From: Mobula birostris
Lineage: Eukaryota
DNA length: 64,000 nt
Direction: 5' to 3'
Assembly: GCF_030028105.1 (NCBI RefSeq)
Contig: NC_092374.1
Location: forward strand, 178,398,057 to 178,462,056
A program made the position numbers and the translations under genes. Below, piece after piece: positions 4,157 through 64,000 of this stretch. The notes under the pieces were generated by a model, which saw nothing but the letters and a program-made list of their open reading frames with translations, searched no databases and was not told the origin of the DNA. Position 1 is the first letter of the stretch, and every line of letters starts with the position of its first letter.

Positions 4157-4157
4157 A

Positions 4158-5460: not shown

Positions 5461-5461
5461 A

Positions 5462-5627
5462 ACCATATAGTCATAGTCACACTTTATTGATCCTGGGGGA
5501 AATTGGTTTTCGTTACAGTTGCACCATAAATAATAAATAGTAATAGAACCATAATAGTTAAATAGTAATATGTAAATTAGGCCAGTAAATTATGAAATAA
5601 GTCCAGGACCAGCCTATTGGCTCAGGA
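5462..5627 (-). mobile_element. L2/Rex-Babar-type LINE 3' tail fragment
   Basis: Reverse complement matches the 3' end of the copy at 31290-31420 (ggtgcaactgtaa..aaaaccaatttccccc..gatcaataaagt..gactatgact). Confidence 0.7.
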
Positions 5628-7140: not shown

Positions 7141-7149
7141 ACTAAATTT

Positions 7150-32364: not shown

Positions 32365-34393
32365 AACCTCCCCCCCACCTGTCCTTCTGAATTTCATTCA
32401 GTACAAGTCAATAGAGATCAAGCACTCCTCATATATTAAGGAGAGAAGGAAGAATATGACAGATGAGGAAGAAAAGGCAAGAACAGGTGGTCAGAATTAG
32501 TTTTGAACCCAAGTAATGTAATCATTGAGTGCAGAGGAAGGTCTAATCTGAGACTGTGGTGTGGTCAAAGGGAGGGTGGTAGTGTGATATCCTCAGATAC
32601 GCGGAGAGTACTACACTGTCAGTGGGGCCATGCACTGTGGAGGGGCAGGTAGAAGTTGTGGGGTACTGAAGGAGAAGCATTGCACAGTCAGTGGAGCAGA
32701 CATCATCTCATCGGGGAGAGGTGCTTTGTTATCTCTGAGGAATTCAATGAAGAAATGGCACTCGATCAGCAATCAGTTGCAACGCATTGACAGGGTGTAA
32801 TTCAGAGGAACACTATTGTGTTTCTCAAAATTAGAAAAGTAAGTTCAGTATATACAGTACTACAAGTACCACATTAAATGAGGAGAGTAGGGAACAGCCC
32901 CTTCAAACAGGTAAAGAGAGGCTGCATCCTCATACACAACACATACTTGTGATACATGGTTGCTTTCAGCCCACGGAAGTGACAAGCAGCTGGGAAACTT
33001 ATTACAGAGCTCTCTGTGTCAACATTGGAATATTGCTTTGGTTCCTCACTGGGGATGGAAAACATCATGGTCTTTGGGCTCTTGTTAGAGGTGGAAGGTA
33101 GTGCTGTTGTTCTAGAGGGAGAGGGTTAGCACAACACAGTGAATTTCTGGACTTGTGCCAGTGAACTGCTTTCTCTTCCTCAAGGAAGAAAAGTAATCAA
33201 GGTGTCTCCCCCCCCCCCCCCCGCAACCGCCGCAAAAAAAAAAAGGAAATTTCATATTGTACTGTCTTCACATATATTTTCTTGCAGCACAGGGTAGTCG
33301 AGGCCTCTGGGTGAGGACATTCAGGACATGGTTCTGCACCTAATTTTGTGCAACAACAAAGACTCCAGAGTTAGGGGTATGGAAGGAAACGGACAGTTGA
33401 CATATCAAGTCAAAATCCTTCATCTGGATTTGATCCAAAATGTTTAATCTCCATTTCCTTCCACAGATGCTGCTTAACACTATGAGCTCCCCAAGGAGTT
33501 TGGGTGTGGGTCCAGTTTGCAGCATCTGCAGCCTCTTCTGTCCTCCCAGGTAGGGATCTGTTGTCTGAGATGCAGAGTTACATTTGCTGTGAACTACCCA
33601 CTGCACCCCAGTCCAACTCCAGCTGAGTAATGTTACACAGATTCTGCCTATTCCACAGAATAGATGAGGAGGAAGAATAGTTCTTAGTGTGTGCATGAGG
33701 AATTCAGAGCAAGTGATAGACAAGTGTGATTGGATGGCCATGGGGCTGTGAAACCTGTGGAGGAATAGAGTTTAGAGTGTTTTGGAAGGCCTGGAATTTA
33801 GCAGCAGGAGTTTTGTGTTTGGACGAACAGCAGGGACTTAGATGTTAAAAGGAAAATCCCGAAACAAAGAAACACAGAACAGTGCACTGGGAAACAGACT
33901 GTCCTTGTTATTCCTCAGGCTGGCGCTACCATGACTGAGAAGGGACAGCAATCAAAACACCGCATGAACCTATTTACTACCCTGATCTTCTAACCTGGCC
34001 TTTAAGCTACTTCCACTAATGGTCTATTTCCCCATAATCATTTTCCAGTTTAGTCACATCATTGAGGACCATAGGGCAATCTCCAATTTTGTCATGATTC
34101 CCAGAGATTCCTTCTTAAGGTTTTATTTCCCCTCCAACCCCGCTGATTATTTTTGATCTCGACCTTTTACTTTAGACTATTTTGCTAATATATTTTCTAT
34201 CTTCTGCATCCTGGACCCTTACAGCTTTTCATATCTCCCTTTAGTGTCCTCTGCTCCTAAGAAGTAACTGCAACTGCTCAATTGTCCTCAAAAACAAAAG
34301 TACCCAGACTTTGCAGATCTCCCCTACACCCTCTCTTGTGCTATATCATCTTTGTAGTTCACGTAACATTTGCCAACTGTACTTGTTGGGCAG

Positions 34394-34506
34394 GACTCGG
34401 TGTGCTCCATGGAGCAGGTCCCATACTGTGGTTCATAGCTATGTTTGCAATAATTATTGGAGTGATGTAGAGGAGCAGCTTAGAGATAGCTAAGGCATTA
34501 CTACAG
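34394..34506 (+). CDS. Orphan terminal (GPI-signal-like) exon of a paralogous MHC class I-like gene; coding 34394-34470
   Basis: cag acceptor, gt donor, 113 nt, the same length as 63265-63377; encodes GLGVLHGAGPILWFIAMFAIIIGVM*; 50/77 nt identical to the paralog, ungapped; downstream intron 34507-34589 and 3' sequence to about 35115 also align. Confidence 0.7.
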
Positions 34507-37500
34507 GTGGGTAAACACAGATCTATTATCTAATCCTATTTTCTGTCACAGTACTGGACAACCAATCTCTTCTCATTTTTCCTTTGCAGATAAGTGTTTG
34601 GCCCGAACTCAAGCACAGCTCTGAACACAGGGTGGAGCCTCAGCCTGGTTTGGTTATGAATGGCCACGTATTTCAGTAAACTTAGTGTTGTATCAGTATG
34701 GAAGCTGATTAGCTTAATCTTCTGCGGTTTTGCAATGCACCTTTTTCCCAGTTTTAAATTTTCTTACATCTCACTCAGAATTCAGGTTTCAGTGTTGTGG
34801 TGTGTTGAAATCTGAGCATCTCATCCACAAGGTCTTACCTGAGATGAGTTGCTCTCCTCAACTTTAGCTGAAACATCAATATCATATATCAGACCATTGC
34901 TGTGAAGGGCTGTGGCCAAGGAAAGTTCATGGGTCAGGCAGAGAAAGCTTTGCTGGGTGATTGGAAGTACCTCACCGGAAGTGGGAATGCTGTGGACACT
35001 GGAGACCCAAAAGTAATTCTTTCCTTAATGGAGATTGGGAGGGTCCAACATTTAGCTTAAAATATGAACAGAAGCCTCTGGCTAATGGAGCAATTCGGTT
35101 CGAGATTTGAGTTGAAAATATCTGAGAATCATAAAAAAATTGTAAATAGATTCATGAATATGTGTGTGGCGACCTCTTTCTCCTTCTTGCGTCCCCCAAA
35201 GGAGGTTTCTTGCATTCTAACGATCTACCTCTCTCCCTCAATGCCGTCAGAGGATGATGCCTCAGTACTCCAGTGATCCAGACTCAATCCTGATCTCCAG
35301 CATTGTCGGTTTGATTTTTTTCACATTGTCCCTGTGACTGCTCAGAGGTTCCAGTTCCTTCCTCTATCCCAAACCTTGGTCACTGTAAAGTTTCTCTGGT
35401 GTGTGCAGGAGAGCAGTAGAATCTGGGGGCAGTAGAGAAGTGTGAAGGAGAGTAAAATGGGATTATTGTGTATGGGGATGGATACTCAGCACAGGCTATG
35501 TAGGCTGAAGAAAGTGTTTCTGTACCCTGATGCAGAGGAAAGAACCCCATATGCAGAAGGGTCTGTCTTCACCTGATGTTTTTAAGAGTTGCTGCTCTGG
35601 CCCTTTGCCTTGTTCTGACTGAAACGCAGGCCGTGATGGAGGGGAAAGAGCGGACTGGAGACTGACCTGACTGTGCTGATTACCTCTACAGGCATGGGGA
35701 GTCCCAAGAGTTCGGGAAAATCTCTGTCCAGCTTCAGGTGACTAAAAAATGTACTCTCACCTCACTGCAGGAATGCTTGAAGCAGACATGACATCCCTGT
35801 GTTATTCAGTGCTACCTCCCTGTATTTGTGAGGCACCTAGGGGAGAGTTATTGGGGGAATATGCATGATCCCAGTACTGAATATGGTCCAGGGGGTGTCT
35901 GGGTTCAGTGAGTGCTTCAGTCCCACAGGTTGTTCTGAAACTTGAAGTAAGATCATCAAGCGCTGCAAGTAATTATTCTATTATCCATGTGATTTCTGCA
36001 TTTGATGATCTTTTCAGACATACAGCACATCCAAGCCTTTAACCCTTTCACTATCGTGGGATGTCCAGGAAGTGTTTTACCATCCATAAATCCTGCTGGG
36101 ATGTAGCCAGGTTGTGAAGTTAGAAATGGGGTATTCTATCTGTGAACAGTGAGATCCCATCCAGAGCAATTAAATAATTACCAGACACTTCTTAGCCGTG
36201 GGCTGAGGGGAACATTGGCCTGAATGTGGTGACAGCCCTCCTGCTCTTTAAAACATATCGTGGGATTTTCTACACCTGAGATGCAGAACAGGATTGGTCT
36301 AATGTTTTAACTGAAACACAACACCTTTGACAGTATGGAAAACGTCTGAACTGCTCTCTGATCACGTAAAATTCCATCAATACCAAGACTCTGGCAAGGC
36401 ATCTATACTCTCTATGGAGGATGGGAGGTGACTTAATAATGGTGTATGAGAGGCACCAATAGAGTGAAATTCCAGCAACTTTTTCCCAAGGTGGCAATGG
36501 CCAATACCAGGAGACATCAGTTTAAGGTGAACGGAGGGAAGTTTATGGGAGATGTCAAAAGTGGTTTCTCTGACAGTGAATGGCGGGTGTTTGGAATGCA
36601 CTGCTGGGGGTGGTGGTAGATACTGATACAACAGGGATATTTAGAAGTCTCTTAGATAGGCACGTGGATGTAATAAAAATAAAGGGTTTGATGCAGTGCT
36701 AGGAGGAAAGATTAAGACTGATCACGCAGTACATTTTTATTGGTCAAAACAACATCATGGGCTAAAGGGACTGTACTGTGCTCTACTGTTCCATGAAACA
36801 CAAGTGTAGAAATATTGCTGAACTGCTCTCCGATCATGCAGCATTCACTTAATACCATCTCTGACAATGCAACCCATTCTCAGCACAGCACCCTCCCCCC
36901 CCCCCAGGGTGCAGACATGCAATGCTACACCATTGCCCCACTACCAAGTATTTGACCATGCACTGCTCCCTCTGCACAACAGTGCAGCTCACCAATGCCA
37001 CAGTGCTCCCCTAGCACTGCACCTTTGACACTGCATCACTCTCTCAGCAATGGTCTTTCAGATAATTCACTTCTGAATGTGAATCAGTGTCATTGCAGCA
37101 ATGGTGGAGTCCATCACTCCAGAAGTATAGTACTTCCCTGTAATTATCAATTTGGATTAGACCAGGTGAAAATGTCCTTCAATGGAATTAGTCCCAAATC
37201 TATGTAGCCAGACCAATCATCTCCCTGCAATCAAGGGGCAAAAAGCATTCTGATCCATCTGTGCATGTTCAAAATTTTTGGCATTGATTTCTCAGCTCTT
37301 TTCTGTCTTCCCCAATCTACCTCTTCATATTTCAATTTGTAACAGCAGTTAGCCATAGAGAGACTGGCCCTTCAGCCTGCTGAGTCTGTGCCAACCCACT
37401 TCCTACATTTCACTCTCTCCACATTTTCATGGACTCCTCCCCCTCCCCCCAGATTTTCATACTCACTCACACACTAGGAGGAACTTACAACTGTTAGCTA

Positions 37501-39779: not shown

Positions 39780-41000
39780 ATAGTGTAGTCGACAGGGTAT
39801 GTGGGAGAGAAGGGATGCATGAAGGAACGTGGGAGAGCGTACGGGGTGGGGAAGGGTTGGGGAAAGCGTGCGGGGTTAGAGAGCGCTTGGGCGGGACGGG
39901 AGCGCGTGCACGAATAAAGAACGCGCACGTAGGAAAAGGACAGGGTGGGGTGTAAGCAAGTGAGGAAGTGGGGGTTGGGAGAGGGATAGGTGCAGCTTGG
40001 GGAGCAATGAGTTTGCAAGGAAGTCCGCACTGGCGTCTGGCAGTGTATTGTACAGAAGTGTAATCCTAGTTGTCCAGGAGCGAGGGCGCAAGAGACGAGA
40101 TCCGGAGAATCGAGTGCATAGAGACACGTGAATAAGCAGTCGCTAGAATTTAGAGCAGAAACCAAAATTCTGGGGGATCTCGTGTGGAGGGAAGTGGTCA
40201 GTTGACGTTTTGGAATCTTATCTCTACTCTCAGCCCTTCACATAGCCGGCTACCTGCCCTTTACCCTTCCAGTCTAGATGAAGTACTTTGACCCAAAACG
40301 TCGTCTGTGCATTTCCCTTCATAGATGCTGCCTGACCCGTTGAGTTCTTGCATCAGTTTTGTTTTCCAGCAGGGATTCCCAGCCTGGGGTCCATGGCCCC
40401 CTTGCTTAATTATATTGGTCGATGGAATTAAAAAAGATTGGGAACCCCTGTTGTATACAGCGACTGGAGACGGTTTGTGGTGATCATCTCCCGGGAGGGT
40501 CCTGGAAACCTGCCCAGAGATGTGTCAGTGACTGGGTGTTGCTGCCTGCGCCTCTCTGTCGCGGTCTGCATGTGCCCACATCCTTACTGGAAGTGGTTCG
40601 GCTCCGCATCCTCCACTGCACATCCTGTGCCTGGCCGGCTGTCTACCGGCCCGCCTCCCTCCCTCCCTCCCTCCCCCGCTCCCCCCCTCCCCCTCCTCCC
40701 CACTCCAGAGCAGCGGCGGGCTGGTTATTTCTGCAGGAAGATTTTTAGTTACAGGAGTTCTTACTGGCTGCTCCTTGTAGCAGGCACTATTTATCCCCGA
40801 ACTGCCTCCGTGAATCTTATCTGCGCCCGCAGCAGTTTATTGACCAACGAGTAGATTTGTCGAGGTGAGGAGACACCGCAATGGAGAGTTGGAACGGACT
40901 GGGATCTCTCCTTTTCACCATATTGTCTCTCTGCTGTGTTGCGGGAAGCCAGGCAGGTAAGGCGAGGGTGTGTGATGGTTTTAAAGGTCTGGAGCTGCGC
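39780..41000. promoter_or_regulatory. CpG-rich island / probable promoter region
   Basis: Locally retained CpGs in a CpG-depleted background, GC-box-like polypyrimidine tract 40650-40700, candidate donors at 40865 (+) and about 40590 (-). Confidence 0.5.
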
Positions 41001-41263: not shown

Positions 41264-42921
41264 GTTGGGGTGTGTAATGAAGAGACAGGAATTATATCCA
41301 CGAAATCACCCCGCCCGCTCCCCCCCCCCGCCACACACACACACCATCACCAAGAAAACCTCAAACAATATCAAAAAGTCTGATGCTCATCACAATGAAA
41401 GTCAATGCTCACTTAAACACATTAGATGGCAGTGGTATCCTAACAAACTTTCCATGTTTACCTGTGTGCCAAAGATCGCAATTTAGCAATGAGAAGTTTC
41501 CTTTCCACCTCTTAGGAGCTGCATTCAAACAATATATGCTGCACTGTTTCTTGACAAATACACTCACTGCAGATGCCAATATCATGCATATTATTCAACT
41601 TAGTATGTCCAATATGTAAATGTGTAAGTAAGACTTCTCTCCTTTTATATCCATCTCCCAGTTGAGTTCCCACCATCCTCTGAATTTTATATAAAAGCCG
41701 TTGTTTTATTCCTTTATCCCAAATGAAAAGGTACTTCACCCATTTCTCCCAGTAATAGTAGAATTTGGGAGATTTAATAGTACCACAACATAATCCAGAT
41801 GCTTGAGATTGAACTTTATCTCGGGTCTTTAAGACCACTGGTGAGGCAACACATCCATAATCAAATACAGATTAAAGCAATATACATTTACTTCAGTGAC
41901 CTCCTACTCACACCCAACTAAGCAACTGAGCACGTTAACGACATTTCTCTGGAATTTTATTCACATGCACTATGCATGTTAGCCTTGTATCCATCTACAT
42001 ACCAACTACAAACATAAAGCTTCACCAGTATCTCTTGTTTAAGTGATGTAATGTAAAGCTTGAGATCATGTGTGGGTGTAATGTTCCTTTCAGTAAAACA
42101 AAATTTAGACTGCCCAAGAGAAAATTTAAACACACACCGACATCACCAGTCTTTCTACTTCATTAATAGCTGCCTGCATTTTCCTAACTATTTAATTTAT
42201 GTCCTTGCCTCTCTTCCACACTGCAGCATTCCTTCATCAGCATATAATGATCTGGAAATATCTAAGCCAACAATTAAGAAGATACCATTAATCATAATAA
42301 AAAGGAGTGGGGTCCCATTCTCTATTTCATACTCCTCAAAAAAAGGTGTTTCTACCCTAACTTGTATCTCCTTATCATTTAAAACATCTACCACTTATTG
42401 CCATCTTTTCCAGGTTAAGCAGCAACCCTTGTGTCCATAACAAATAAGCTCTCTCTAGATCAAAGAAAACTGCCACCACTGGTTCTTTATTAACTTGGGC
42501 CTTAAAAATATCAAATTCCAAACTTAATACCAAGTCCATCATCATTCTTTCTACGAAATCCAGATGGGTATACAGCCTATAGGAAGCCTTGTGATAACTA
42601 TTTGTTCCGTTACCTTACATACATGTGAAATTAGCAAAGTAGGTCTATATAATAATAAGTACTTTATTGATTACAAGAGGGGAAATCTTTCATTACAGTA
42701 GCAGCATTTAAAAACACACAGCAGTGTGCAGACTAACTAGCAATAACGTACAGCATAATAACATACCAATGTTCAATAAAATGCAATAATAATGTATGAA
42801 ATAATAAAGCAGGGACTAATGTACTAGGATGCGTGTTCTGTCACAATGAGATGAATTGTTGTATATGCTTCAAAGTTGCTGGTGAATGCAGCAGGCTAAG
42901 CAGCATCTGTAGGAAGAGGTG

Positions 42922-42959
42922 CAGTCAACGTTTCAGGCCGAGATCCTTCGTCAGGACTA
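42922..42959 (-). ncRNA. Minimal hammerhead ribozyme, GUU cleavage triplet
   Basis: Minus strand UAGUC-CUGACGA-AGG(AUCUCGG)CCU-GAAA-C-GUU-GACUG. Confidence 0.65.
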
Positions 42960-43255
42960 ACTGAAGGAAGAGTGAGTAAGGGATTTGAAAGTGGGAGGGG
43001 GAGAGGGAGATCCAAAATGATAGGAGAAGACAGGAGGGGGAGGGATAGAGCCAAGAGCTGGACAGGTGATAGGCAAAAGGGGATACGAGAGGATCATGGG
43101 ACAGGAGGTCCGGGAAGAAAGACAAGGAGGCGGGGGGGACCCAGAGGATGGGCAAGAGGTATATTCAGAGGGACAGAGGGAGAAAAAGGAGAGTGAGAGG
43201 AAGAATGTGTGCATAAAAATAAGTAACAGATGGGGTACGAGGGGGAGGTGGGGCC

Positions 43256-45370
43256 TTAGCGGAAGTTAGAGAAGTCGATGTTCATGCCATCAGGTTGGAG
43301 GCTACCCAGACGGAATATAAGGTGTTGTTCCTCCAACCTGAGTGTGGCTTCATCTTTACAGTAGAGGAAGCCGTGGATAGACATGTCAGAATGGGAATGG
43401 GATGTGGAATTAAAATGTGTGGCCACTGGGAGATCCTGCTTTCTCTGGTGGACAGAGCGTAGATGTTCAGCAAAGCGGTCTCCCAGTCTGCGTCGGGTCT
43501 CGCCAATATATAAAAGGCCACACCGGGAGCACCAGACGCAGTATATCACCCCAGTCGACTCACAGGTGAAGTGTTGCCTCACCTGGAAGGACTGTTTGGG
43601 GCCCTGAATGGTGGTAAGGGAGGAAGTGTAAGGGCATGTGTAGCACTTGTTCCGCTTGCACAGATAAGTGCCAGGAGGGGATCAGTGGGGAGGGATGGGG
43701 GGGACGAATGGACAAGGGAGTTGTGTAGGGAGCGATCCCTGCGGAATGCAGGGGGGGGGGTGGAGGGAAAGATGTGCTTAGTGGTGGGATCCCGTTGGAG
43801 GTGGCGGAAGTTACGGAGAATAATATGTTGGACCCGGAGGCTGGTGGGGTGGTAGGTGAGGACCAGGGGAACCCTGTTCCTAGTGGGGTGGCGGGAGGAT
43901 GGAGTGAGAGCAGATGTACGTGAAATGGGGGAGATGAGTTTAAGAGCTGAGTTGATAGTGGAGGAAGGGAAGCCCCTTTCTTTAAAAAAGGAAGACATCT
44001 CCATCATCCTAGAATGAAAAGCCTCATCCTGAGAGCAGATGCGGCGGAGACGGAGGAATTGCGAGAAGGGGATGGCGTTTTTGCAAGAGACAGGGTGAGA
44101 AGAGGAATAGTCCAGATAGCTGTGAGAGTCAGTAGGCTTATAGTAGACATCAGTGGATAAGCTGTCTCCAGAGACAGAGACAGAAAGATCTAGAAAGGGG
44201 AGGGAGGTGTCGGAAATGGACCAGGTATACTTGAGGGCAGGGTGAAAGTTGGAGGCAAAGTTAATAAAGTCAACGAGTTCTGCATGCGTGCAGGAAGCAG
44301 CGCCAATGCAGTCGTCGATGTAGCGAAGGAAAAGTGGGGGACAGATACCAGCACGGAACATAGATTGTTCCACAAAGCCAAAAAAAAGGCAGGCATAGCT
44401 AGGACCCATACGGGTGCCCATAGCTACACCTTTAGTTTGGAGGAAGTGGGAGGAGCCAAAGGAGAAATTATTAAGAGTAAGAACTAATTCCGCTAGACGG
44501 AGCAGAGTGGTGGTAGAGGGGAACTGATTAGGTCTGGAATCCAAAAAGAAGCGTAGAGCTTTGAGACCTTCCTGATGGGGGATGGAAGTATATAACGACT
44601 GGACATCCATGGTGAAAATAAAGCGGTGGGGGCCAGGGAACTTAAAATCATCGAAAAGTTTAAGAGCGTGAGAAGTGTCACGAACATAGGCCGGAAGGGA
44701 TTGAACAAGGGGTGATAAAACCGTGTCGAGGTATGCAGAAACAAGTTCGGTGGGGCAGGAGCAAGCTGAGACAATAGGTCGGCCAGGACAGGCAGGTTTG
44801 TGGATCTTGGGTAGGAGGTAGAAACGGGAAGTGCGGGGTGTGGGAACTATAAGGTTGGTAGCAGTGGATGGGAGATTCCCTGAGCGGATAAAGTCGGTGA
44901 TGGTGTGGGAGACAATGGCCTGGTGCTCCTTAGTGGGGTCACGATCGAGGGGTAAATAAGAGGAGGTATCCGCGAGTTGTCGCTGTGCCTCGGCAAGGTA
45001 GAGGTCAGTACGCCAGACTACAACAGCACCCCCCTTATCGGCGGGTTTAATAATAAGGTTAGGATTAGTGCGGAGGGAGTGGAGAGCAGAACGTTCCGAA
45101 GGAGTGAGGTTGGAATGGGAACAAGGTGCGGTGAAGACGAGACGGTTGATGTCCCGTCGGCAGTTAGCGATAAAGAGATCCAGAGCAGGCAGAAGGCCAG
45201 AGCGGGGTGTCCATGAAGAAGAGGAGGGTTGAAGACGGGAGAAGGGGTCATCGGTGGGGGTGGAAGAGTCCTTGCCGAAGAAGTAGGCTCGGAGACATAG
45301 ACGGCGGAAGAAAAGTTCTGCATCATGGCGAACACGGAACTCGCTGAGATGTGGGCGAAGGGGGACAAAC
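43256..45370 (-). pseudogene. Penelope RT + GIY-YIG endonuclease, 5'-truncated, frameshifted near 43680
   Basis: IIKPADKGGAVVV, YLLPKIHK..GRPIVS, MDVQSLYTSIP, GVAMG..GPSYA, RYIDD; then GVIYCVWC..LYIGET..RFAEH. Confidence 0.9.
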
Positions 45371-45961
45371 GTGAGGATCCGGGTCCAACATATTATTCTC
45401 CGTAACTTCTGCCACCTCCAACGGGATCCCACCACTAAGCACATCTTTCCCTCCCCCCCCCCCGCCGCATTCCGCAGGGATCGCTCCCTACACAACTCCC
45501 TTGTCCATTCGTCCCCCCCATCCCTCCCCACTGATCTCCCTCCTGGCATTTATCCGTGTAAGCGGAACAAGTGCTACACATGCCCTTACACTTCCTCCCT
45601 TACCATCATTCAGGGCCCCAAACAGTCCTTCCAGGTGAGGCAACACTTCACCTGTGAGTCGACTGGGGTGATATATTGCGTCTGGTGCTCCCGATGTGGC
45701 CTTTTATATATTGGCGAGACCCGACGCAGACTGGGAGACCGCTTTGCTGAACACCTACGCTCTGTCCGCCAGAGAAAGCAGGATCTCCCAGTGGCCACAC
45801 ATTTTAATTCCACATTCCATTCCCATTCTGACATGTCTATCCACGGCCTCCTCTACTGTAAAGATGAAGCCACACTCAGGTTGGAGGAACAACACCTTAT
45901 ATTCTGTCTGGGTAGCCTCCAACCTGATGGCATGAACATCGACTTCTCTAACTTCCGCTAA
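45371..45961 (+). pseudogene. Penelope GIY-YIG endonuclease fragment (inverted duplicate arm)
   Basis: CKRNKCYTC, GVIYCVWCSRCGLLYIGETRR, E-H..LQPDGMN. Confidence 0.9.
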
Positions 45962-46257
45962 GGCCCCACCTCCCCCTCGTACCCCATCTGTTATTTATTT
46001 TAATGCACACATTCTTCCTCTCACTCTCCTTTTTCTCCCTCTGTCCCTCTGAATATACCTCTTGCCCATCCTCTGGGTCCCCCCCCCCCCTTGTCTTTCT
46101 TCCCAGACCTCCTGTCCCATGATCCTCTCCATATCCTCTTTTGCCTATCACCTGTCCAGCTCTTGGCTATATCCCTCCCCCTCCTGTCTTCTCCTATCAT
46201 TTTGGATCTCCCCCTCCCCCTCCTACTTTCAAATCCCTTACTCACTCTTCCTTCAGT

Positions 46258-46295
46258 TAGTCCTGATGAAGGGTCTCGGCCTGAAATGTGGACTG
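46258..46295 (+). ncRNA. Hammerhead ribozyme motif, probably inactivated
   Basis: UAGUC-CUGAUGA-AGG..CCU-GAAA-U-GUG-GACUG; cleavage triplet GUG and stem III disrupted. Confidence 0.5.
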
Positions 46296-47258
46296 CACCT
46301 CTTCCTACAGATGCTGCCTGGCCTGCTGCATTCACCAGCAACTTTGATGTGTGTTGCTTGAATTTCCAACATCTGCAGAATTCCTGTTGTTTGTTGTATA
46401 TGCTTATTGCATTTGGTAGGAAAGATTTTCTGTAGCAATCCTTATGATGGCTGAGCTGAATGAGTATATTCAAAAAGGTGCTCCACTACTTATTCCGTAG
46501 GTAATGGAGAGGATGTTCCAGATTGTCCATAATGGATAACAGTTTGTTTTATGACCTCCTCTCCACCATTTAGTCAAACGAGTCTGGACTGTAGCCAAGG
46601 CCGGATCCAGCCTTTTTGATGAGTTTATTTAGTCTTTTTGCATCACCAGCTCCAATGCTGCTCCCCCAACAAAAAGCAGCAAAGAAGACTTGCTACAACA
46701 GACTGGTAAAAGATCTACAATATCCTGCTACACACGTTGAAGGATCTCAGCTTCCCTAAATTTCAACCACAATTGACTCATAATCAACCCCAAACTCCAA
46801 AAGTCTACTGTATATGCTATCCCAGTTTTGGCAAATGTAGACACTCCTCCATTGCCCATTTTCCGATCATGGCTTATGTTAACATAACTTTGTATTTTGA
46901 GACTGACAGGATTTCAACCAGGTTTCCTGTACACATGACGTCAAGTTTATTTGGTAAATCTGCAATAAATTTCTTATCCTCTTGACCACTAGCTAACAGG
47001 CTTCTAGAATTCCATTGTAAGATTAAATGCCATTAACAACTCTCTTTTGAAATGTGAACATTTTTACTCCTTGAAAGGCATCATTAATAGCTTCTAGTAT
47101 TTTATGTCAATGTTTTTCTTCTGCTTTTCACATAATTTTAATATTTGTCCTATTTCAGTTTGTGCTGTACAATTTACCACATCTGCCATGACAGTTTATC
47201 AACAATTAGAGAATCCTTTGTTATACAATTATGTACTTTACACAATGCCATTAAACTA

Positions 47259-53811: not shown

Positions 53812-54514
53812 TATGTGGTAAATGAAGCTTCATTTTAAAAATATTTTATTTGCTTTATTCACTCATGGACGTGGATTCACAAAGTGAACCACTGTTTAGT
53901 TCCCCAACCCAAGATGTCCTTGAGAAGGTGGCTGGTTGCTGCCTTTTTGAACTGGTGCTGTACTCGAGCTGTGGATATATCCACAATGGTGTTCAGGTCC
54001 AGATAGTACTAAGTCTATGCTCTCTCAATTTTGGACAAGCCCTCAGTTAGTCAGTGTCAAGAGTGGTTGCTACATCCTCACAGCACAGAAGCAGGCACTT
54101 AGACCCAACAGGTCCATGTCAGCCAAGATTACCATCCAACTTGGCTCATTTGACTCATATCCCTCTAAACATTTCCTATCTGTGTACCTATCCAAGCATC
54201 TTCAATAGTGATACCCAAGTTGCTCAATAGTTTGGAGGATTGGGACCCTTCATTTTCTGTCCCCACTGCAGTTGGGTTCTTCTATCCAGAGCTGCTTAGG
54301 ATTTATACCTGGCTGATGCAGTGAGGCCTGTTTTAGTGTTGGTGGTTCCACGTGGATGGGGAGCCAATCACAGGGGTGAGGTGGGTGCCTAATTTGTGTG
54401 CCTGTGCATTAATTTGGGCAAGTGGAGAGTCTTCCACCAGAGTTTTGCCTTATAAATGGAGGGCATCCTTAGATATTTTCTCACACTCCTCTCTCACTCT
54501 CTTCTTTTTTTCAG

Positions 54515-54763
54515 TCTCCCACAGCTTGACATATTTCTACCTCCATTCGATAAACATTCCTGAGCTGCCATACATCTCCATGGTTGGGATGTTGGATGAC
54601 CTGCAGATATGCTACTATGACAGCACCATCCAGAGGGTAGAAGCCAAGCGACAGTGGATCATGGACGGCTTTTCAGCTAACGACTGGAAAAACCAGAAAG
54701 AGATCCCGGACGCAATTAAAAAGTTACTTCCTCCTAATCTGACTCCATTCGCCTCGATGCTTG
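54515..54763 (+). CDS. MHC class I-like heavy chain, alpha1 exon (phase 1-1, 249 nt)
   Basis: Polypyrimidine tract + cag acceptor, G|gtacgt donor; (V)SHSLTYFY..P..VGMLDDLQICYYDS..R.W..DW matches the class I alpha1 pattern. Confidence 0.9.
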
Positions 54764-56741
54764 GTACGTGTCTTTTGATTTCCGCTGTTCTTCGAGGCTC
54801 ACAGTGACTTGCACACTGAAAACACGTTGACCTTTCAATGGACCAAAGTAGGTTGTATCAGTTTTAAAATTCCTATCCTTGGTTTCAAATCTTTCAAGGG
54901 TTATATGCCTTCCCGACATCCTCTAACACATATTTACCTTCAATTAAAAGCATTCCATCTGTATCCCACATTTGCAAGAGAAATTTTGCCCTTCAAAAAA
55001 AACTGAGAATCTATTTCTGAGAACCCAGTGCTCATTCCACACCGATCTCCTCCGAGAAATAATGAGAATCAGACCCACTGCCTCTCTGGCTTCGCACGGG
55101 TCAAGCAAACATAAGTTAATATAAAGTAAAATTCAAATATATTACGTGTAATTTGCATGTGTACAAAAACATAATGATACTTATGCAAATTGGGAGAAAA
55201 ATCATGAGAAGTAATGTTGGGGTTTTTCAGCTTGGTTCAAGAACCTGATGGCAGTGGAGGGAAAGGTGCTAAACCTTGAGGTGTGGGTTTTCTGGCTACT
55301 GTAACTCATGCTTGATGGCAGCATGGGGAAGAGGACACGGCCCTGATGGTGGTTGTCCCTGCTGAAGAATGTCACCTTCACTGGTAAATGTCCTCCATCG
55401 GAGAGAGTTTCAATACTAGGACGTGATTTCTATAAATTTGTCAGAGTTTTCAATGACATGCTGAATCTCCTTAGACTTCTAAGCAAAGATGTTGGTGTGC
55501 TACCTTCTCCACACACTGATATGCAGTACACAGTCCTTCATCATGACCCCTGCATTATATCATGCAATGATATACACTCTGTACAGATCACCCCCTCCAC
55601 CAACAATATTCCACTGTGCCACACTCTCATGCTCACGTTCATTACTGATCCTGTCATGTGTACCACACACTGCATGCAGAACACTGTGATCCCATGCTCT
55701 TTGCCATTGCTTTGTGTGCTTCATGGTAAATTGCTAAATTGATTTGTTATTGTCGTATCTGCTAAGGTCCAGTGAAAAACTTCGTTTTGCACACCATCTG
55801 TACATGTCATTTCGTTAACACAGTACATTGAGGTGCAAGAGGAAGCAATAACAGAATGGAGAATGAATTGTTACAGTCATAGAGAAAGTGCAATGAAAGC
55901 AGACCATAAGGTGTAAAACCATAATATGGGTGTTTGTGAGGTCAGGATTTCATATTATTGTACCAGGGGATTATACATAGACTGATAACAGCAGGATAAA
56001 AGCTGCCCTTGACCCCGGTGATATATGTTTTCAGGCTTTTGTATCTTCTGCTCTATGGGATGGGGAAGAAGAGAGAATGTCATCGAACACAGAAGAGCGC
56101 AACAGTGTTGTGCTGAACCGGCTAAAAAGCTAATCAAAAACACCCAAACACTAATCTGTCCTACCTACACCACATCCATATACATCCATCCTCCTTATAT
56201 CAATGTACCTATCCAAATGTCTCTTAAAGTCCTTTAATGTATTTGCCTCTACCACTGTACTAGGCATCCATGACTCTGAGTAAAGAAAAGACTTACCCCT
56301 CAGATCCGTCTTGAACCAACACCTCTCACCTTCTATGCATGTCCTCTGGTGTTAGACATTTCAACCCTGGGAAACGGATGCTCTCTAATCATGTCTCTGT
56401 TTAACCTCTATCAGAAGGTTGTCTTATCTTTTCATCCCCGTCCTTCTTTCTAACCAGGAACATACTTTTCCTGTACTCTAGAAATTGATATTTAAACACA
56501 CTCCACATGTCTATTGTAGATTTGCCAGAGAAAAAGTGTTCTCAATTAACGCTTCTTAGTACCTGCCTAATGCCCTTATAATTTGCCCCACCCCAATTTA
56601 AAGCTGGTGGATGGATGGGGTCTTTGATTTTGTTGTCTGATTTACTGAAGCAGCGAGAAATGTAGATAGAATGTGCGGAGGGGGGCGCTGTGTGTGCTGA
56701 TCTGTGTCCATAACTTTCTGCAGTTTCTTGTGATCATGAGC

Positions 56742-56946
56742 CAACCGGTGGCCTAGTGGCATCAGCACTGAACTTCTGAGCGAAGGCTCCCGAGTTCGAA
56801 TCCAGCCGTCTCCCTTGCACGCTTTCCATTCATGCTGGGTTGAGCGTCGAGCTAGCAACTCGGCCTCTTTAAAAATAAGAAAGCCGGCTAAAAAAACACC
56901 ATCATGACGGCGTCCCAGTGACTCCACTCGGGCTTTCTTCTTCTTC
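56742..56946 (+). mobile_element. tRNA-derived SINE with a (TTC)n tail and 17-bp TSD, in the alpha1-alpha2 intron
   Basis: A box tggcctagtgg 56749-56759, B box gagttcgaatcc 56792-56803; TSD ttcttgtgatcatgagc at 56725-56741 and 56947-56963. Confidence 0.9.
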
Positions 56947-57169
56947 TTCTTGTGATCATGAGCAGACCTGATGCCATACCAAGCTGTGATGCCTATATTG
57001 TACATCAATAAGCATGACTGAGGGTCAAAGGGGACATGTCATATACTTCACCCTACTGAGACAGTGCACATGGTATTTACATGTTTAGCAAGACATTATG
57101 CAGGTGGGAATGGTTGAAGAATTCGAATATTCAGCCACTAACACAGATTAACCTGTTGGTCCTTTCCAG

Positions 57170-57439
57170 GCATCAGATACATCCAGGGGCTTCTGGGCTG
57201 CACGCAGTCTGCAAATACATTCAAAACCTTCCTCAAGATTGGCTGCCAAGATTTAGGAGAGCTCATTTGTGACTTCACTACCGGGAAGTGTATTACCACT
57301 GGTGTCCTGATGTTGGTCAATGATTATCTTCAGCAAGTTAATATTGCTGATATTCCTGAAATTTATATGCTGAACAGTAGCTGCATCCAGTATTTGAAGA
57401 AAGGTCTTCGGCTTGGCAGAGAGGAGCTTGAAAGGCAAG
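57170..57439 (+). CDS. MHC class I-like heavy chain, alpha2 exon (phase 1-1, 270 nt; not in the ORF track)
   Basis: cctttccag acceptor; open frame GIRYIQGLLGCTQSANTFKTFLKIGCQDLGELICDFTTGKCITTGVLMLVNDYLQQVNIADIPEIYMLNSSCIQYLKKGLRLGREELERQ with Q96, G100-C101, C164 and a class I end motif; G|gcaagt GC donor. Confidence 0.88.
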
Positions 57440-58224
57440 GCAAGTGGAACATCTGATTACATACTGTAAGCTCTGTGAGGGAACTCCTGCTTCAGACAAT
57501 TGATGGACTCCTGATCTGAGATGTTCAGGGGTGTCTTGACACAAATGGATGGGATCAGCCTGATTCTGAGTTTGTGAGAGAGTTTTTGATTCAGCACAAT
57601 GAGGGGACTCACAATCGAAGTGACATGACCAAATTTGGTGAGCAGTGTTCTGGTCTAAGAAGATGAGAGAGGTCCCAATCTGCGACACTGGGGGATCTCC
57701 CAATTCTGAATGGTGAGCAATGTCCTTATCTGGGGTGAAGGGTACCTCAACTGAAGGTGACTAATGATGTCCAAGTCAAGGATTGTGTTGGAACTTCTAT
57801 TTAGACACAGTAACAGATCTCCCAATCCAGGACATTGAGGGCATCTCTTGATCAGGAATTTTGAAGGATCTCCCAATTAAGGCTGGTAAACTAAACTTAA
57901 TTTGGGGTGATTATGGCATGATCAATCTTGGAATATGAGGTAATATTGACTTGGGACTATGGGTGACATAAAGATTGGTAACGGTGGCTGTAACCTTGAT
58001 CTAGGCCTGTCAGATGAATGAAAATTACTGCTGGCTATGGTCTGCATGGACTTGAGCTGAGGAGATGATTTCGGGCAGGATAGTGATTAATGGTGAGGTA
58101 GGTCCTGGTCTGAGGCAGTAAAGAGTAAGAATCCCACTCTTGGACACTGTAACTTCCATTTGTAATGGTAAGATAATATAAGTTTGTGTTGACTTAGTGA
58201 CGTTAATTCTTCATTCTTCCCTAG

Positions 58225-58500
58225 TTGCTCCAGAGGTTCAGGTGTTGAAAAAGAGGCCAACAGCTACTGAGGGCGAGAGTCTGTCATGCATCATCACTCC
58301 CTTCTACCCCCGTGCTATCAACGCCACTTGGCTGAAGAATGGACAGGTTGTCTCCAAGGGCTACGAGGTGACCGTGCTACCAAACTACAATGATACATAC
58401 TGGATGGAACTAGTCATTGAGCTGCAGGATAATGATACGAATATCTATACCTGTCATGTCAAGCACAGCAGCCTGCCGGGGGCACTGATGGTGCAGGGAG
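58225..58500 (+). CDS. MHC class I-like heavy chain, alpha3 (Ig-C1) exon (phase 1-1, 276 nt)
   Basis: ttccctag acceptor, G|gtaggt donor; VAPEV..LSCIITPFYPRAINATWLKNG..TVLPNYNDTY..YTCHVKHSSL Ig-C1 motifs. Confidence 0.93.
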
Positions 58501-59140
58501 GTAGGTCATCGTACGGTACAGAATTTGCTTCATTCTGTTGTGGTGGCTCATAAATTCATACAGTACTGAAGGAGGCCATTTGGCTCACCACATACATGCT
58601 GACCCTCTGGTGCCAGTCTATTCCAACCAGTACTTGGTCTGTACTTCGGCCTTCTCTTCCTCGATGATTCAAGTGCTTGTCAGAATTATGATATGAAAAT
58701 TGATCTTTTGCACAGCAGTACAGTGCAAAGACATAAAAGGCGTATGAGCTTAGAACATGGACCAACTCATGAAATTATGATACTGTAGCTATAGGTGAGA
58801 TTTACTAGCTGGAGGGAAGACTGCCAGCCCAAGGTGCGTGGATGAGAAGAGTATGTAGGTCTAGACCCAGGTGTGGATTGAAGGGAATAAGCAAAATGGC
58901 ATTTTGACAGACTAGATGGGCCAAATGGACTGCTTCTGTGCTGTAGTGCTCCATGACTGAAAGATAACATAAATTATAAAATGAAGTAATTAGTGCAAAA
59001 ATTGGAATAATGAGGTTGTGTTCATGGGTTCATGACTATTCATGAATGGTAGAAGAAAAGAAGATGTTTCTGATTAGTGCAACACACATAAAAGTTGCTG
59101 GTGAACGCAGCAGGCCAGGCAGCATCTCTAGGAAGAGGTG

Positions 59141-59178
59141 CAGTCGACGTTTCAGGCCGAGACCCTTCGTCAGGACTA
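59141..59178 (-). ncRNA. Minimal type I hammerhead ribozyme, intact core
   Basis: Minus strand UAGUC-CUGACGA-AGG(GUCUCGG)CCU-GAAA-C-GUC-GACUG. Confidence 0.75.
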
Positions 59179-60767
59179 ACTGAAGGAAGAGTGAGAAAGG
59201 GATTTGAAAGTTGGAGGGGGAGGGGGAGATCCAAAATGATAGGAGAAGACAGGAGGGGGAGGGATAGAGCCAAGAGCTGGACAGGTGATTGGCAAAAGGG
59301 ATACGAGAGGATCATGGGACAGGAGGTCCGGGAAGAAAGACAAGGAGGGCGGGGGGACCCAGAGGATGGGCAAGGGGTATATTCAGAGGGACAGAGGGAG
59401 AAAAAGGAGAGTGAGAGAAAGAATGTGTGTATAAAAATAAGTAACAGATGGGTTACGAGGGGGAGGTGGGGCATTAGCGGAAGTTAGAGAAGTCGACGTT
59501 CATGCCATCAGGTTGGAAGCTACCCAGACGGAATATAGAATGAAAAGCCTCATCCTGAGAGCAGATGCGGTGGAGACGGAGGAATTGCGAGAAGGGGATG
59601 GCATTTTTGCAAGAGACAGGGTGAGAAGAGGAATAGTCCAGATAGCTGCGAGAGTATTGCCTTCCCGCAATTCCTCCGTCTCTGCCGCATCTGCTCTCAG
59701 GATGAGGCTTTTCATTCTATGACGAGGGAGATGTCTTCCTTTTTTAAAGAAAGAGGCTTCCCTTCCTCTACTATCAACTCTGCTCTTAAACGCATCTCCC
59801 CCATTTCACGTACATCTGCTCTCACTCCATCCTCCCGCCACCCCACTAGGAATAGGGTTCCCCTGGTCCTCACCTACCACCCCACCAGCCTCCGGGTCCA
59901 ACATATTATTCTCCGTAACCTCTGCCACCTCCAACGGGATCCCACCACTAAGCACATCTTTCCCTCCCCGCCTCTCTCTGCATTCCGCAGGGATCGCTCC
60001 CTACGCAACTCCCTTGTTCATTCGTCCCCCCCCATCCCTCCCCACTGATCTCCCTCCTGGCAGTTATCCGTGTAAGCGGAACAAGTGCTACACATGCCCT
60101 TACACTTCCTCCCTTACCACAATTCAGGGTCCCAAACAGTCCTTCCAGGTGAGGCAACACTTCACCTGTGAGTCGGCTGGGGTGATATACTGCGTCTGGT
60201 GCTCCCGATGTGGCCTTCTATATATTGGTGAGACCCGACGCAGACTGGGAGACCGCTTTGCTGAACACCTACGCTCTGTCCGCCAGAGAAAGCAGGATCT
60301 CCCAGTGGCCACACATTTTAATTCCACATCCCATTCCCATTCTGACATGTCTATCCACGGCTTCCTCTACTGTAAAGATGAAGCCACACTCAGGTTGGAG
60401 GAACAACACCTTACATTCCATCTGGGTAGCCTCCAACCTGATGGCCTGAACATCGACTTCTCTAACTTCCGCTAAGGCCCCACCTCCCCCTCGTACCCTG
60501 TCTGTTACTTATTTTTATGCACACATTCTTTCTCTCACTCTCCTTTTTCTCCCCCTGTCCATCTGAATATACCTCTTGCCCATCCTCTGGGTCCCCCCCC
60601 CCTTGTCTTTCTCCCCAGACCTCCTGTCCCATGATCCTCTCATATCCCTTTTGTCAATCACCTGTCCAGCTCTTGGCTCCATCCCTCCCCCTCCTGTCTT
60701 CTCCTATCATTTTGGATCTCCCCCTCCCCCTCCAACTTTCAAATCCCTTACTCACTTTTCCTTCAGT

Positions 60768-60805
60768 TAGTCCTGACGAAGGGTCTCGGCCTGAAACGTC
60801 GACTG
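60768..60805 (+). ncRNA. Minimal type I hammerhead ribozyme, intact core
   Basis: UAGUC-CUGACGA-AGG(GUCUCGG)CCU-GAAA-C-GUC-GACUG; stem I UAGUC/GACUG, stem II AGG/CCU, palindromic ACGU stem III. Confidence 0.78.
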
Positions 60806-61749
60806 CACCTCTTTCTAGAGATGCTGCCTGGCCTGCTGCGTTCGCCAGCAACTTTGATGTGTGTTGCTTGAATTTCCAGCATCTGCAGGATTCCTGCTGT
60901 TTCTGATTAGTGTCTTCTTTGTGAGTCCTGTACCTTTTCCCTGATTGCATTAAAGGAGAAGAGGGCATGTCCCAGATGGCAAGGGTCCTGAGTACTGGAT
61001 GCCACCTTCTTGAAGCACTACCGCTTGAAGATGTCTTCGGTGGTGGGGTGGTTTCTGCCCTTGATGGAGCTGACTGTGTCAACAATTCTCTGCAGCTTCT
61101 TATACTTCGTAGATATCAAAATAATTTTTAAACGCTGTGAGAATGTCTGCCTATACCAGCCCCTTAGGCCGCTAGCCCATTAATCAAAAAAAAACTTCTC
61201 TCTATTCTCTCTAAATCTCTTAATCCTTGCCTTAAACCTACCTCTACAATAATAAGCAACTCTGCCATGGGGAAAAGTTTGCTGCTGTTTTATAAAAGAA
61301 ATTAAGCAGGAGCAGTATACAAACTACTGCAGTAAAAAAAAAGCTTTGTTCTTTCAGCATTTTGTACATTTTTCCTTTCAATGCCCCTAACAATTTTGTA
61401 TAATGCCATCAGCTCCTCTCACAACCTCCTCCCATTCAGGGAAATCAAACCCAGTCTCTTCACTGAAACACTGCATCCCAATAAATTCCTGGTGAATCTC
61501 CTGTGTACTCTGTTCCATGCAATCAAATTGTTCCTCTGGGTTGGTGACTGAAAATGCATCAAGTACTTGGGATGTAGCGTAGGTAATGTTTTGTAAAGCT
61601 GTTCCATAATTTCCTTGGTCTTGTATTCTGTGCCCATATTAATGAACACTCGTACCCTGTACACTTTGTTCATCACTATACCTACCTCTTTGACTGACCT
61701 GATGATGTATCTCCTCAGTAAAGCTGCACCAGAGCTTCACAGAACACCA

Positions 61750-61995
61750 TGGTAGTGTAGTTCAGAGTTCAGTTCCAATACCCTCTGTAAGAGTTTGTAT
61801 GTTCTCTCCATGAACTGCCTGGATATCCTCTGGCTGCTCCGGTTTCCTCCCATAGTCCACAGACGTACCAGCTAGTGGGTTAATTTGTCATTGTAAATTG
61901 CCCTATGATGAGGCTGGTGTTAAATAGGTGGGTTGTTGGGTGGTGCAGTGCATTGGTCCAGCAGGGGCTGGTCTGTACTGTATCTCCAAATAAAA
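61750..61995 (+). mobile_element. V-SINE-like SINE
   Basis: gagtttgtatgttctctcc..gctccggtttcctccca core and ctgtatctccaaataaaac tail. Confidence 0.7.
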
Positions 61996-62889
61996 CAAAT
62001 TATATTTTATGCCCTGATTAATAAATCCTGTAGGCTTTCTTTACCACCCTGTCTATCACTTTGAAAGAGCTGATCAAGTAGCTCCATTCTTCTCTTACAC
62101 GCCTCTGAACGTTTCTTTCTTCAAAAAACATGTCCCATGTTCTTGCTGAAAGTTATTATTTACAAGGTTACAGTATCTTCAGATTTTCTCTTGTTTGTGT
62201 TCAGTCGTAAGAAGCAATTATGAGTTATGGGCCAAAGAAACATAATAGACGCTCAAGGAAAGAAACAACTGAGAAGTGATTCGGCCTATGGGTCAAGACC
62301 TTCCTGGCTGAGAAATGACTGATATTCAGAGAAGTCATAGACCCTTACCGAACAAAAACAGGCCCATCTGCACAACTGGTCTATGCCAACCAAGATTCCT
62401 AACATGGCCCATATACTACCAAACATTTCCTGTCTATCTACTGGTTCCAGTGATTTTTTTTTGTTTAAAATGTTGTTAATGTAGCTGCCAAAACCATTTT
62501 CTCTTGCATCTCCTTCCCTGTGCTGACAACTTCTGCTTGAGAATGTTGGCCCTCCGGTTTCTATTATATTTTTCACTAATCACCTTAAACCTTTGTCCTA
62601 AAGTTCCTGATGCCCAAATCCTGGAAAAGAGATTGTGCGTTCATCCTCTCTATGCTCTTTATGATTTTATACGTTATTCTATATATCTCAACCTCTTACA
62701 TTCAAGGGAAAATAATGGCAAGCTATGCTACTTCCCCTTCTAATTCAAGTGTACCTTTCTTGGCAACATCCTTGAGAATATTTTGTACACCTTTTCCAGT
62801 TTAATGACTTCCTTCCTTTGTCAATATGCATAAGATCACCCCATTCTCCTCAGCTCCAGTGAATAAGACATCGCCCGCACCATACATGC

Positions 62890-63247
62890 TTTCTTCTTCC
62901 CCCATCTTCTGCTGAGCAGAAGGTAAGGAAGCCTGAAAGCACACACTGATGATCAAGGACAGCTTCTATTTTGCTGTTATAACAGTATTGTAGAGTTCCA
63001 TAGTACGGCACATTTAACCTTTGATGTCACGATCAACCGTATTGTGGCCCTTGCTCCTTACTGTGTGCCTGCTCTCTACTTCCTCTGTAACTGTTACAAG
63101 TTGCTTTGCATTCTGTTATTTTTGCCCCTTGTATTATCTCAATGTGCAATTGTAATGCAATTATCTGTGGATGGCATGCAGTACAAAGATTTTTCAGTGT
63201 ACCTTGGTACATGTGACAACAATTTAAAATATTACCAATTTACCAAT
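62890..63247 (+). mobile_element. L2-type LINE 3' fragment immediately upstream of the terminal exon acceptor
   Basis: gcctgaaagcacac..caaggacagcttcta motif and (ccaattta) tail ending at about 63247. Confidence 0.65.
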
Positions 63248-63264
63248 CTTTACTTGGTGAGTAG

Positions 63265-63377
63265 GAGCCGGGGAGCCTCGTGGTGCAGGTCCTTTGCTGG
63301 GGCTGATGGTGACACTTACGATGATGATTAAAGTGGTGTAGAGGAGCAGCAAGGAGAGAGTCAAGACTTTAGTGCAG
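63265..63377 (+). CDS. MHC class I-like terminal coding exon (hydrophobic tail, stop at 63339-63341) followed by a 3' UTR intron
   Basis: tag acceptor in phase 1, in frame with alpha3; encodes GAGEPRGAGPLLGLMVTLTMMIKVV*; donor gtgggt at 63378, acceptor ttttgcag at 63462; structure conserved in the paralog at 34394. Confidence 0.68.
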
Positions 63378-64000
63378 GTGGGTAAACACGCAGGTCCTTT
63401 CACTAATCCTGCTTGCCGTCACAGTATTGCTCAACCAATCTCTTCTCGTTTTCCTTTTGCAGGTGGGTGTTTGGCCCAAATCTCAAGCTCAGCTCTGAAC
63501 ACAAGCTGGATCCTCTGCCTGGTTTTGTGATTAATGGTTCAACACTTAAGCAAGCTTAGTGTTGGCTCCAGTGCGGGAAATGCTTAGCTGAATCTTCTGC
63601 CACCTTACAGCTCGTCTGTTTTGCAATGTTATAACTTTTTCTTACATCTCACTCAGCGATCAGGTTTCAGTGTTGTGGTGTGTTGAAGTTTCAACTTCTC
63701 ATTCGTAAAGCCCTACTTGACCTGAATAGCTCTTCCCAACCCTAACGCCAATGCAATACTGTATATCAGACCATTGGTGTGAGGAACTACTGCCAAGGCA
63801 AGTTAGTGGGATAAAGCAGTGGAAGATTTACTGGGCATTTGGAAAGACCTGAATGGAAGAGTGAATTCCTGTTGTGAACTCTGGATACCTAAGAAGAATT
63901 CTTCCCTTAATATGAGATTGGGAGGGTCCAACATTTTCTTTAAAATAGGAACAGAAACCCCTGTATATTGGTGCAATTTGGGTTGATGTAGAGTTAAAAA

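Follow-up and report, generated by a model that had tools for sequence, protein, structure and literature searches.

A transcript-supported ray member of the nonclassical MHC class I lineage UFA with a distant leader exon and a GC-AG intron

The DNA analysed here, hereafter the window, is a stretch of 64,000 nucleotides (nt) of contig NC_092374.1 from assembly GCF_030028105.1 (positions 178,398,057 to 178,462,056 of the forward strand), and it contains an intact, expressed gene of class I type (major histocompatibility complex, MHC), which consists of five exons for leader, alpha1, alpha2, alpha3 and tail, all on the plus strand. The alpha1 exon (54515-54763, 249 nt, phase 1) lies between an acceptor TTTTTCAG/TC and a donor TTG/GTACGT, and is backed by its frame and splice sites, by Pfam and Protein Data Bank (PDB) matches and by an RNA joint. 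The alpha2 exon (57170-57439, 270 nt, phase 1; acceptor TTTCCAG/GC), for which a PDB match and an RNA joint are likewise available, ends in a GC donor, AAG/GCAAGT. It is followed by the alpha3 exon (58225-58500, 276 nt, phase 1; acceptor CCCTAG/TT, donor GAG/GTAGGT), which encodes an immunoglobulin (Ig) C1-set domain and is marked by Pfam, a PDB match and RNA contigs. The coding part of the last exon (63265-63341, 77 nt, 25 amino acids (aa); acceptor GAGTAG/GA), to which an RNA loose end leads, specifies a connecting peptide and a short hydrophobic C-terminus up to the TAG stop at 63339-63341. The original prediction, which was made from the letters of the window, had proposed these four exons as one stop-free frame with exact coordinates, and spliced together they encode a chain of 290 aa with no internal stop. 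It had also remarked that alpha2 is missing from the list of open reading frames (ORFs), which is correct, but only because this listing needs a start codon: a stop-to-stop frame at 57142-57453 contains the exon.

The extent proposed for the gene was nevertheless incomplete, as the leader exon had been missed. Using the leaders of the related proteins P0001, P0103 and P0104 as tblastn queries (P0001 is a 315-aa relative retrieved by a full-library HMMER search with alpha1), we found the leader 13.6 kb upstream of alpha1, where the signal peptide of P0001 matches positions 40881-40955. The exon (40881-40956) starts with ATG, comprises 25 codons and one additional base, ends in a phase 1 donor CAG/GTAAGG and is also reached by an RNA loose end. 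Addition of the leader results in a complete coding sequence (CDS) of 948 nt, with consensus splice sites at the exon borders, a product of 315 aa and a single terminal stop. Leader candidates near alpha1, e.g. at 53914-53959, were dropped, the RNA loose end having matched the exon at 40881. The 3' untranslated region (UTR), recognised from an RNA contig and from its similarity to 34461-35095, occupies 63342-64000 and continues past the end of the window.

Each of the four junctions in the five-exon model was confirmed by spliced RNA, the check that the original prediction had proposed for its junctions. The RNA evidence consists of contigs of the public runs X1-X3, all from one organism and presumed to be RNA runs, which were placed on 54400-58600; the fraction of sampled alpha3 words present in these runs is 0.52-0.92. 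The joint 54763/57170 (GT..AG) occurs in contigs of X1, X2, X3 and X10, and a joint at 57437/58223, which is ambiguous by two letters, equals the predicted 57439/58225 GC..AG intron. The loose end ahead of 54512 is the 3' end of the leader exon at 40.9 kb, and the loose end behind 58501 is the tail exon from 63266 on; since these joints and loose ends match the predictions, each of the junctions is supported. Two contigs of 846 and 914 nt show 0 mismatches to the window, and a contig of X2 (1667 nt) runs 1573 nt beyond the alpha3 junction, and therefore the 3' UTR passes the window end. The GC donor of the intron after alpha2 (57440-58224) is used in the RNA contigs, and the manta ortholog and three manta paralogs have it as well (loci L001, L003, L004 and L005). 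In all four runs the contig depth over two segments of intron 2 (56092-56373 and 56656-56937) is very high, from hundreds up to about 1900, and each short piece has two mismatches. These segments are dispersed repeats outside the exons of the gene, and probably SINE-like (short interspersed nuclear element) sequences transcribed genome-wide.

The identity of the encoded domains as class I-like is far beyond chance. The alpha3 domain matches the Pfam C1-set family at 7.1e-16, whereas alpha1 gave a weak match to MHC_I (1.6e-5, under the family cutoff) and the Pfam search of alpha2 returned no match. Both C119 and C180, the equivalents of the C101-C164 pair, are kept as fold determinants, and so are the Ig cysteines of alpha3. 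For alpha1, alpha2 and alpha3 alike the top PDB match is 8gm8_A, at 1.7e-14, 4.6e-8 and 3e-23, respectively. The title of this entry is 'Crystal structure of shark nonclassical MHC CLASS I, UFA' (released 2024-11-27), while that of 9CH4 ends '...UGA' (released 2026-03-18); the UFA and UGA identities of both structures were read from these titles as returned by the fold search. In our sampling the 8GM8 chain is represented by P0126, a 265-aa entry of the nurse shark Ginglymostoma cirratum (UniRef A0ABF7PPZ1_GINCI).

A maximum likelihood (ML) tree of 74 sequences (IQ-TREE, LG+C20), comprising the UFA family, a UGA-like family, other elasmobranch and chimaera class I sequences and bony-vertebrate outgroups, places the window gene together with P0126 in a UFA clade of 28 sequences with a support of 100/100. 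Nested inside UFA are a ray subclade (100/99) and a group of the window gene, P0102 and P0001 (100/100), and the UGA-like clade (100/100) is the sister group of UFA at 84/82. The original prediction had supposed that the gene may fall outside the described chondrichthyan lineages, and had named strong nesting in one of them as the result that removes its novelty; exactly this nesting was recovered, and the supposition has to be abandoned. The branching within UFA mostly tracks the species tree, so the lineage is older than the split between sharks and rays. The identities of the window protein are 95.6% to P0102 (M. birostris), 84% to P0001 (Hemitrygon akajei), 53-63% to other myliobatiform and sawfish paralogs, 45-49% to the skate and electric-ray members, 38-42% to the shark members including 8GM8, and at most 30% to anything outside the family.

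Structure modelling, in which P0102 served as proxy for the window protein, led to the same assignment. The AlphaFold2 model of P0102, built on the family alignment, has a predicted local distance difference test score (pLDDT) of 80.7, and its top match in a fold search is again 8gm8_A (Z 23.8, root-mean-square deviation 2.7 Å over 255 residues; Foldseek E 3.4e-28), followed by lipid complexes of chicken YF1*7.1 (Z about 22). Moreover, an alignment (A1) of the shark and ray members and P0102 revealed three signatures of UFA, namely a deletion of 6-8 residues at the end of the alpha1 helix, which is family-wide, a hairpin cysteine pair in alpha2 and a tail-less hydrophobic C-terminus, and the window protein carries the same residues for all three. 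The additional cysteine pair, C142 and C149, is located on two adjacent predicted strands that form a CxxxxxxC hairpin. Our data reveal that the gene, whose model is verified by transcripts, represents the known UFA lineage in a ray rather than a new lineage. With nurse shark UFA it shares the fully supported clade, the best match for all domains and the top structural match, along with the shortened alpha1 C-terminus, the additional alpha2 pair and the loss of the peptide-anchoring residues; it differs from it in having only about 40% identity, a D at Y59 and two further cysteines, C58 and C134, and in belonging to a ray-specific sublineage of a multicopy family, in contrast to the one copy found per shark species. 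The second-closest family, shark UGA (9CH4; orthologs P0014 and P0139-P0149), is the sister clade and is likewise described as CD1-like with a hydrophobic groove. UGA, however, is only about 30% identical to the window protein; its transmembrane region is normal, its cytoplasmic tail is basic, and the hairpin pair of cysteines in alpha2 is missing.

The window gene is the ortholog of the M. birostris gene that encodes P0102, a protein of 315 aa annotated as 'major histocompatibility complex class I-related gene protein-like' (CM057560.1, at about 177.0 Mb), from which the window protein differs at 14 amino acids. The manta locus (L001) aligns collinearly to 38.9-64.0 kb of the window and has an identical exon structure: the CDS read at the homologous coordinates is P0102, and the splice sites are identical, including the GCAAGT donor. 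The introns of both loci are 94-96% identical, compared to 99.3% in alpha1, 96.5% in alpha2 and 98.6% in alpha3. Differences between the loci are chiefly transposon insertions, three of them in the window (42870-46391, about 48.5-51.1 kb and 59079-60900) and one in the manta locus; the lineage-specific insertions of the window are Penelope-like and lie in introns 1 and 4. The ratio of nonsynonymous to synonymous rates (dN/dS, Nei-Gojobori, window against manta CDS) is 0.48 overall, with 14.5 nonsynonymous and 8.5 synonymous changes, and, on counts that are very small, 0.25-0.33 in the alpha1 and alpha2 exons and about 0.9 in alpha3.

On the manta chromosome the ortholog is part of a larger assemblage, as CM057560.1 contains a UGA-like gene, the ortholog and four more UFA paralogs in about 2 Mb (176.8-178.8 Mb, loci L001-L006). 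The UGA-like gene at 176.81 Mb is followed by a UFA paralog at 176.94-176.99 Mb and the ortholog at 177.01-177.03 Mb, with three further UFA paralogs at 178.48-178.75 Mb; the distance between the UGA-like gene and the ortholog is about 190-220 kb, and the remaining UFA copies are found within 1.7 Mb. Individual genes span up to 50 kb, owing to a very long intron 1. UFA has been located in an MHC-linked class Ib cluster (PMC10751288); the window holds this UFA gene as a single gene amid transposons.

Family membership, as determined by searches with P0001 and the shark relative P0008, differs between sharks and rays. We found one UFA member in each of the shark species Cetorhinus, Carcharodon, Mustelus, Pristiophorus, Heterodontus, Chiloscyllium, Scyliorhinus, Heptranchias and Ginglymostoma, and also one each in Amblyraja and Narcine. 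Other rays have more: at least five in Mobula birostris, at least five in Hemitrygon akajei, two in Pristis and two to three in Hypanus. One review describes UFA as single- or low-copy; the evidence presented here is that UFA is multicopy in myliobatiform rays, where it forms two sublineages. The sublineage of the window gene, P0102 and P0001 is the sister group to all sawfish and stingray copies (99/88 in the ML tree) and is distinguished by a replacement of Y59 by D, whereas Y59 is present in the shark UFA examined (8GM8 and Cetorhinus). All three members have the additional C134 in the second alpha2 strand, near the classical positions 116-118, and only the two Mobula-type sequences have C58 in alpha1, near the classical position 33. 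In the standard class I topology the strands of C58 and C134 are non-adjacent, and therefore both cysteines, which are placed in the beta-sheet floor, are probably unpaired. One might speculate that this ray sublineage binds ligands of another class than shark UFA does, perhaps captured covalently, with GPI-anchored (glycosylphosphatidylinositol-anchored) display, although we consider such a scenario quite unlikely. A further sequence close to the window gene is P0115 from Mobula hypostoma (198 aa), with a similar alpha3 and an alpha1 that is 88% identical. Most of its alpha2 is gone and a Tyr replaces the first Ig cysteine of alpha3, so P0115 may be a decayed second copy of the window sublineage in Mobula, or a mis-prediction.

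The groove of the window protein was mapped by an approximate, landmark-anchored sequence alignment with C101, C164 and Y59 as anchors. Classical peptide-presenting class I molecules keep Y7, Y59, Y/R84, T143, K146, W147, Y159 and Y171, of which only Y7 is retained here. The other positions read D59, V143, Y146, L147, M159 and G171, and the region of residue 84 is deleted, in agreement with the original prediction that Y7 is kept, that Y59 and Y171 are replaced by D and G, and that no counterparts of T143, K146 and W147 exist. The grand average of hydropathy (GRAVY) of alpha1-alpha2 is about 0.0, as compared to -0.6 to -0.7 in classical-type chains of sharks and bony vertebrates, and charged residues make up 0.11 of the groove positions, versus 0.20-0.23 in the classical-type chains. 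With the peptide-terminus residues lost and a hydrophobic platform, the reading of the gene as a nonclassical, non-peptide-presenting class I-like molecule, which had already been put forward, is supported.

In the literature UFA and UGA are characterised as CD1-like molecules that bind lipids, and bound lipids are indicated by their crystal structures and by mass spectrometry (PMC12562908; PMC10751288). By analogy with nurse shark UFA, the window protein would most likely pair with beta2-microglobulin, hold a hydrophobic non-peptide ligand of lipid type in the hydrophobic groove between alpha1 and alpha2, and display the loaded ligand for recognition by T cells. The mammalian and avian CD1 molecules and the lipid-presenting chicken YF1*7.1 resemble it in their class I fold and hydrophobic non-peptide groove, and the Hemitrygon ortholog has been named 'CD1d-like' by the NCBI pipeline. 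Orthology to CD1 is, however, not demonstrable: the Pfam CD1 family MHC_I_3 (PF16497) matches with 15.9 bits, below its cutoff of 35, at an E of 0.01, and the protein lacks a cytoplasmic tail and hence the tyrosine sorting motif (YXXZ) of CD1.

The sequence of this C-terminus is G-A-G-E-P-R-G-A-G-P and then, up to the stop, about 15 residues that are mostly hydrophobic: small residues come first, next a short polar spacer and last the hydrophobic stretch, and a cytoplasmic part is lacking. A GPI signal is made up of an omega site with a small residue, about 6-10 spacer residues and a hydrophobic segment on which the protein terminates. In the alignment the same layout is conserved from sharks to rays, including P0001, P0102 and the whole UFA family. 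A C-terminus of small residues, spacer and terminal hydrophobic stretch is likewise found in GPI-anchored molecules of unrelated lineages, namely Qa-2 of the mouse and ULBP/RAET1; unlike in these, the anchor of the window protein is deduced from the sequence. The layout suggests a GPI-attachment signal or at least a tail-less stub, and the putative attachment to the membrane would be by a GPI anchor or a minimal stub. The endosomal sorting of CD1 uses a cytoplasmic tyrosine motif, and given that no cytoplasmic tail exists, sorting of this type would be absent. If UFA is indeed a tail-less lineage with a GPI-signal-like end, its trafficking would differ from that of CD1.

All in all, we are confident, short of certainty, that the window contains an intact and expressed five-exon UFA gene, orthologous to that of P0102, whose product would present a lipid-type ligand and would be attached to the membrane by a putative GPI anchor or stub. 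Several points weigh against parts of this interpretation. The hydrophobic fraction of the groove (0.49) is not above that of other shark class I-like chains (0.49), what stands out being confined to the low charge and the overall hydrophobicity, and the mapping is a sequence alignment in which the helix registers are uncertain. The identity to nurse shark UFA is only about 40%, and the ligand may therefore differ. The dN/dS is built on 23 substitutions, with values of about 0.9 in alpha3 and the leader. Finally, the type of the sequencing runs is a guess ('RNA?').

The alternative explanation that survives best, though we give it only a small chance, is that the gene is derived from UFA but has lost ligand presentation, its product serving as a GPI-anchored ligand for receptors of the natural killer (NK) type or other innate receptors, like ULBP/RAET1 or Qa-2 of mammals. 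The GPI-signal-like tail without a cytoplasmic domain fits such a role, as do an alpha1 helix that is shortened and broken by prolines and the expansion of the ray family to many copies, which is typical of arms races between receptors and their ligands. However, the same tail is found in the single-copy UFA of sharks, for which lipid binding is reported in the literature, the platform remains very hydrophobic, and the protein retains its canonical C101-C164 pair as well as the C1-set domain of alpha3.

Clearly less probable, indeed very doubtful, is a decaying or non-functional duplicate of a tandem class Ib cluster that is transcribed without function. The transposon-rich neighbourhood with an orphan paralogous tail exon (see below) would suit a decaying locus, the M. 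hypostoma sequence P0115 has lost most of alpha2 and an alpha3 Ig cysteine, and dN/dS is about 0.9 in alpha3. Against this, the frame of 315 codons and all splice sites are intact in two species whose neutral divergence amounts to about 5% and in which alpha1 and alpha3 are more conserved than the introns (99.3% and 98.6% versus 94-96%), the overall dN/dS is 0.48, the transcripts are correctly spliced, and the Hemitrygon ortholog P0001 is intact, too. A new chondrichthyan class I lineage beyond UAA-UFA is barely conceivable, since the gene nests at 100/100 in the clade of 8GM8, has 8gm8_A as best match for every domain and shares indels, cysteine pair and tail with shark UFA, even though its nearest non-family sequences are only about 25-30% identical and Pfam MHC_I is under its cutoff on alpha1 and absent on alpha2.

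The supposed unassigned lineage is thus the ray ortholog of UFA, a molecule for which a crystal structure already exists and which has been considered an ancient, CD1-like presenter of lipids. To this our analysis adds a transcript-verified gene model from a ray, with a leader exon far upstream and a GC-AG intron that is conserved, the multicopy state of UFA in myliobatiform rays with a sublineage that carries extra cysteines, and the family-wide short hydrophobic end, GPI-signal-like and devoid of a cytoplasmic domain.

Outside the gene the window consists of transposon sequence. Intron 1 harbours a Penelope-like element with a reverse transcriptase (RT) domain at 42870-46391, and the intron 1 copies include an ORF of 656 aa; a truncated copy with inverted terminal parts lies in intron 4 (59079-60900) and contains a GIY-YIG ORF (60014-60475). 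The copies of the two introns are about 95% identical to each other and neither is present in the manta ortholog locus. An Rfam search of 40000-64000 returned nothing at the gathering threshold, and Rfam up to E 1 did not find a hammerhead ribozyme in the Penelope-like insert (58900-61100), where the matches were merely spurious hairpins on the inverted repeat. On the minus strand, retrotransposon ORFs occupy 3209-7892 and 18425-20144, with an aspartyl protease of retroviral type, an integrase zinc-binding domain and RT at 3-8 kb and a further RT at 18-20 kb.

Upstream of the gene, a paralogous tail exon (34393-34467) is followed by about 650 nt of 3' UTR, the unit extending over 34393-35095. 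Positions 34461-35095 are 75.6% identical, over 652 nt, to 63332-63978, and the encoded tail peptide, at 60% identity, is similar to those of the other sublineage of ray UFA. No more alpha1-alpha3 exons came up in the window, and none upstream of 34393, when 12 family and outgroup proteins were used as tblastn queries; the tail-like exon is therefore an orphan here, and the unit is probably the relic of a tandem duplicate.

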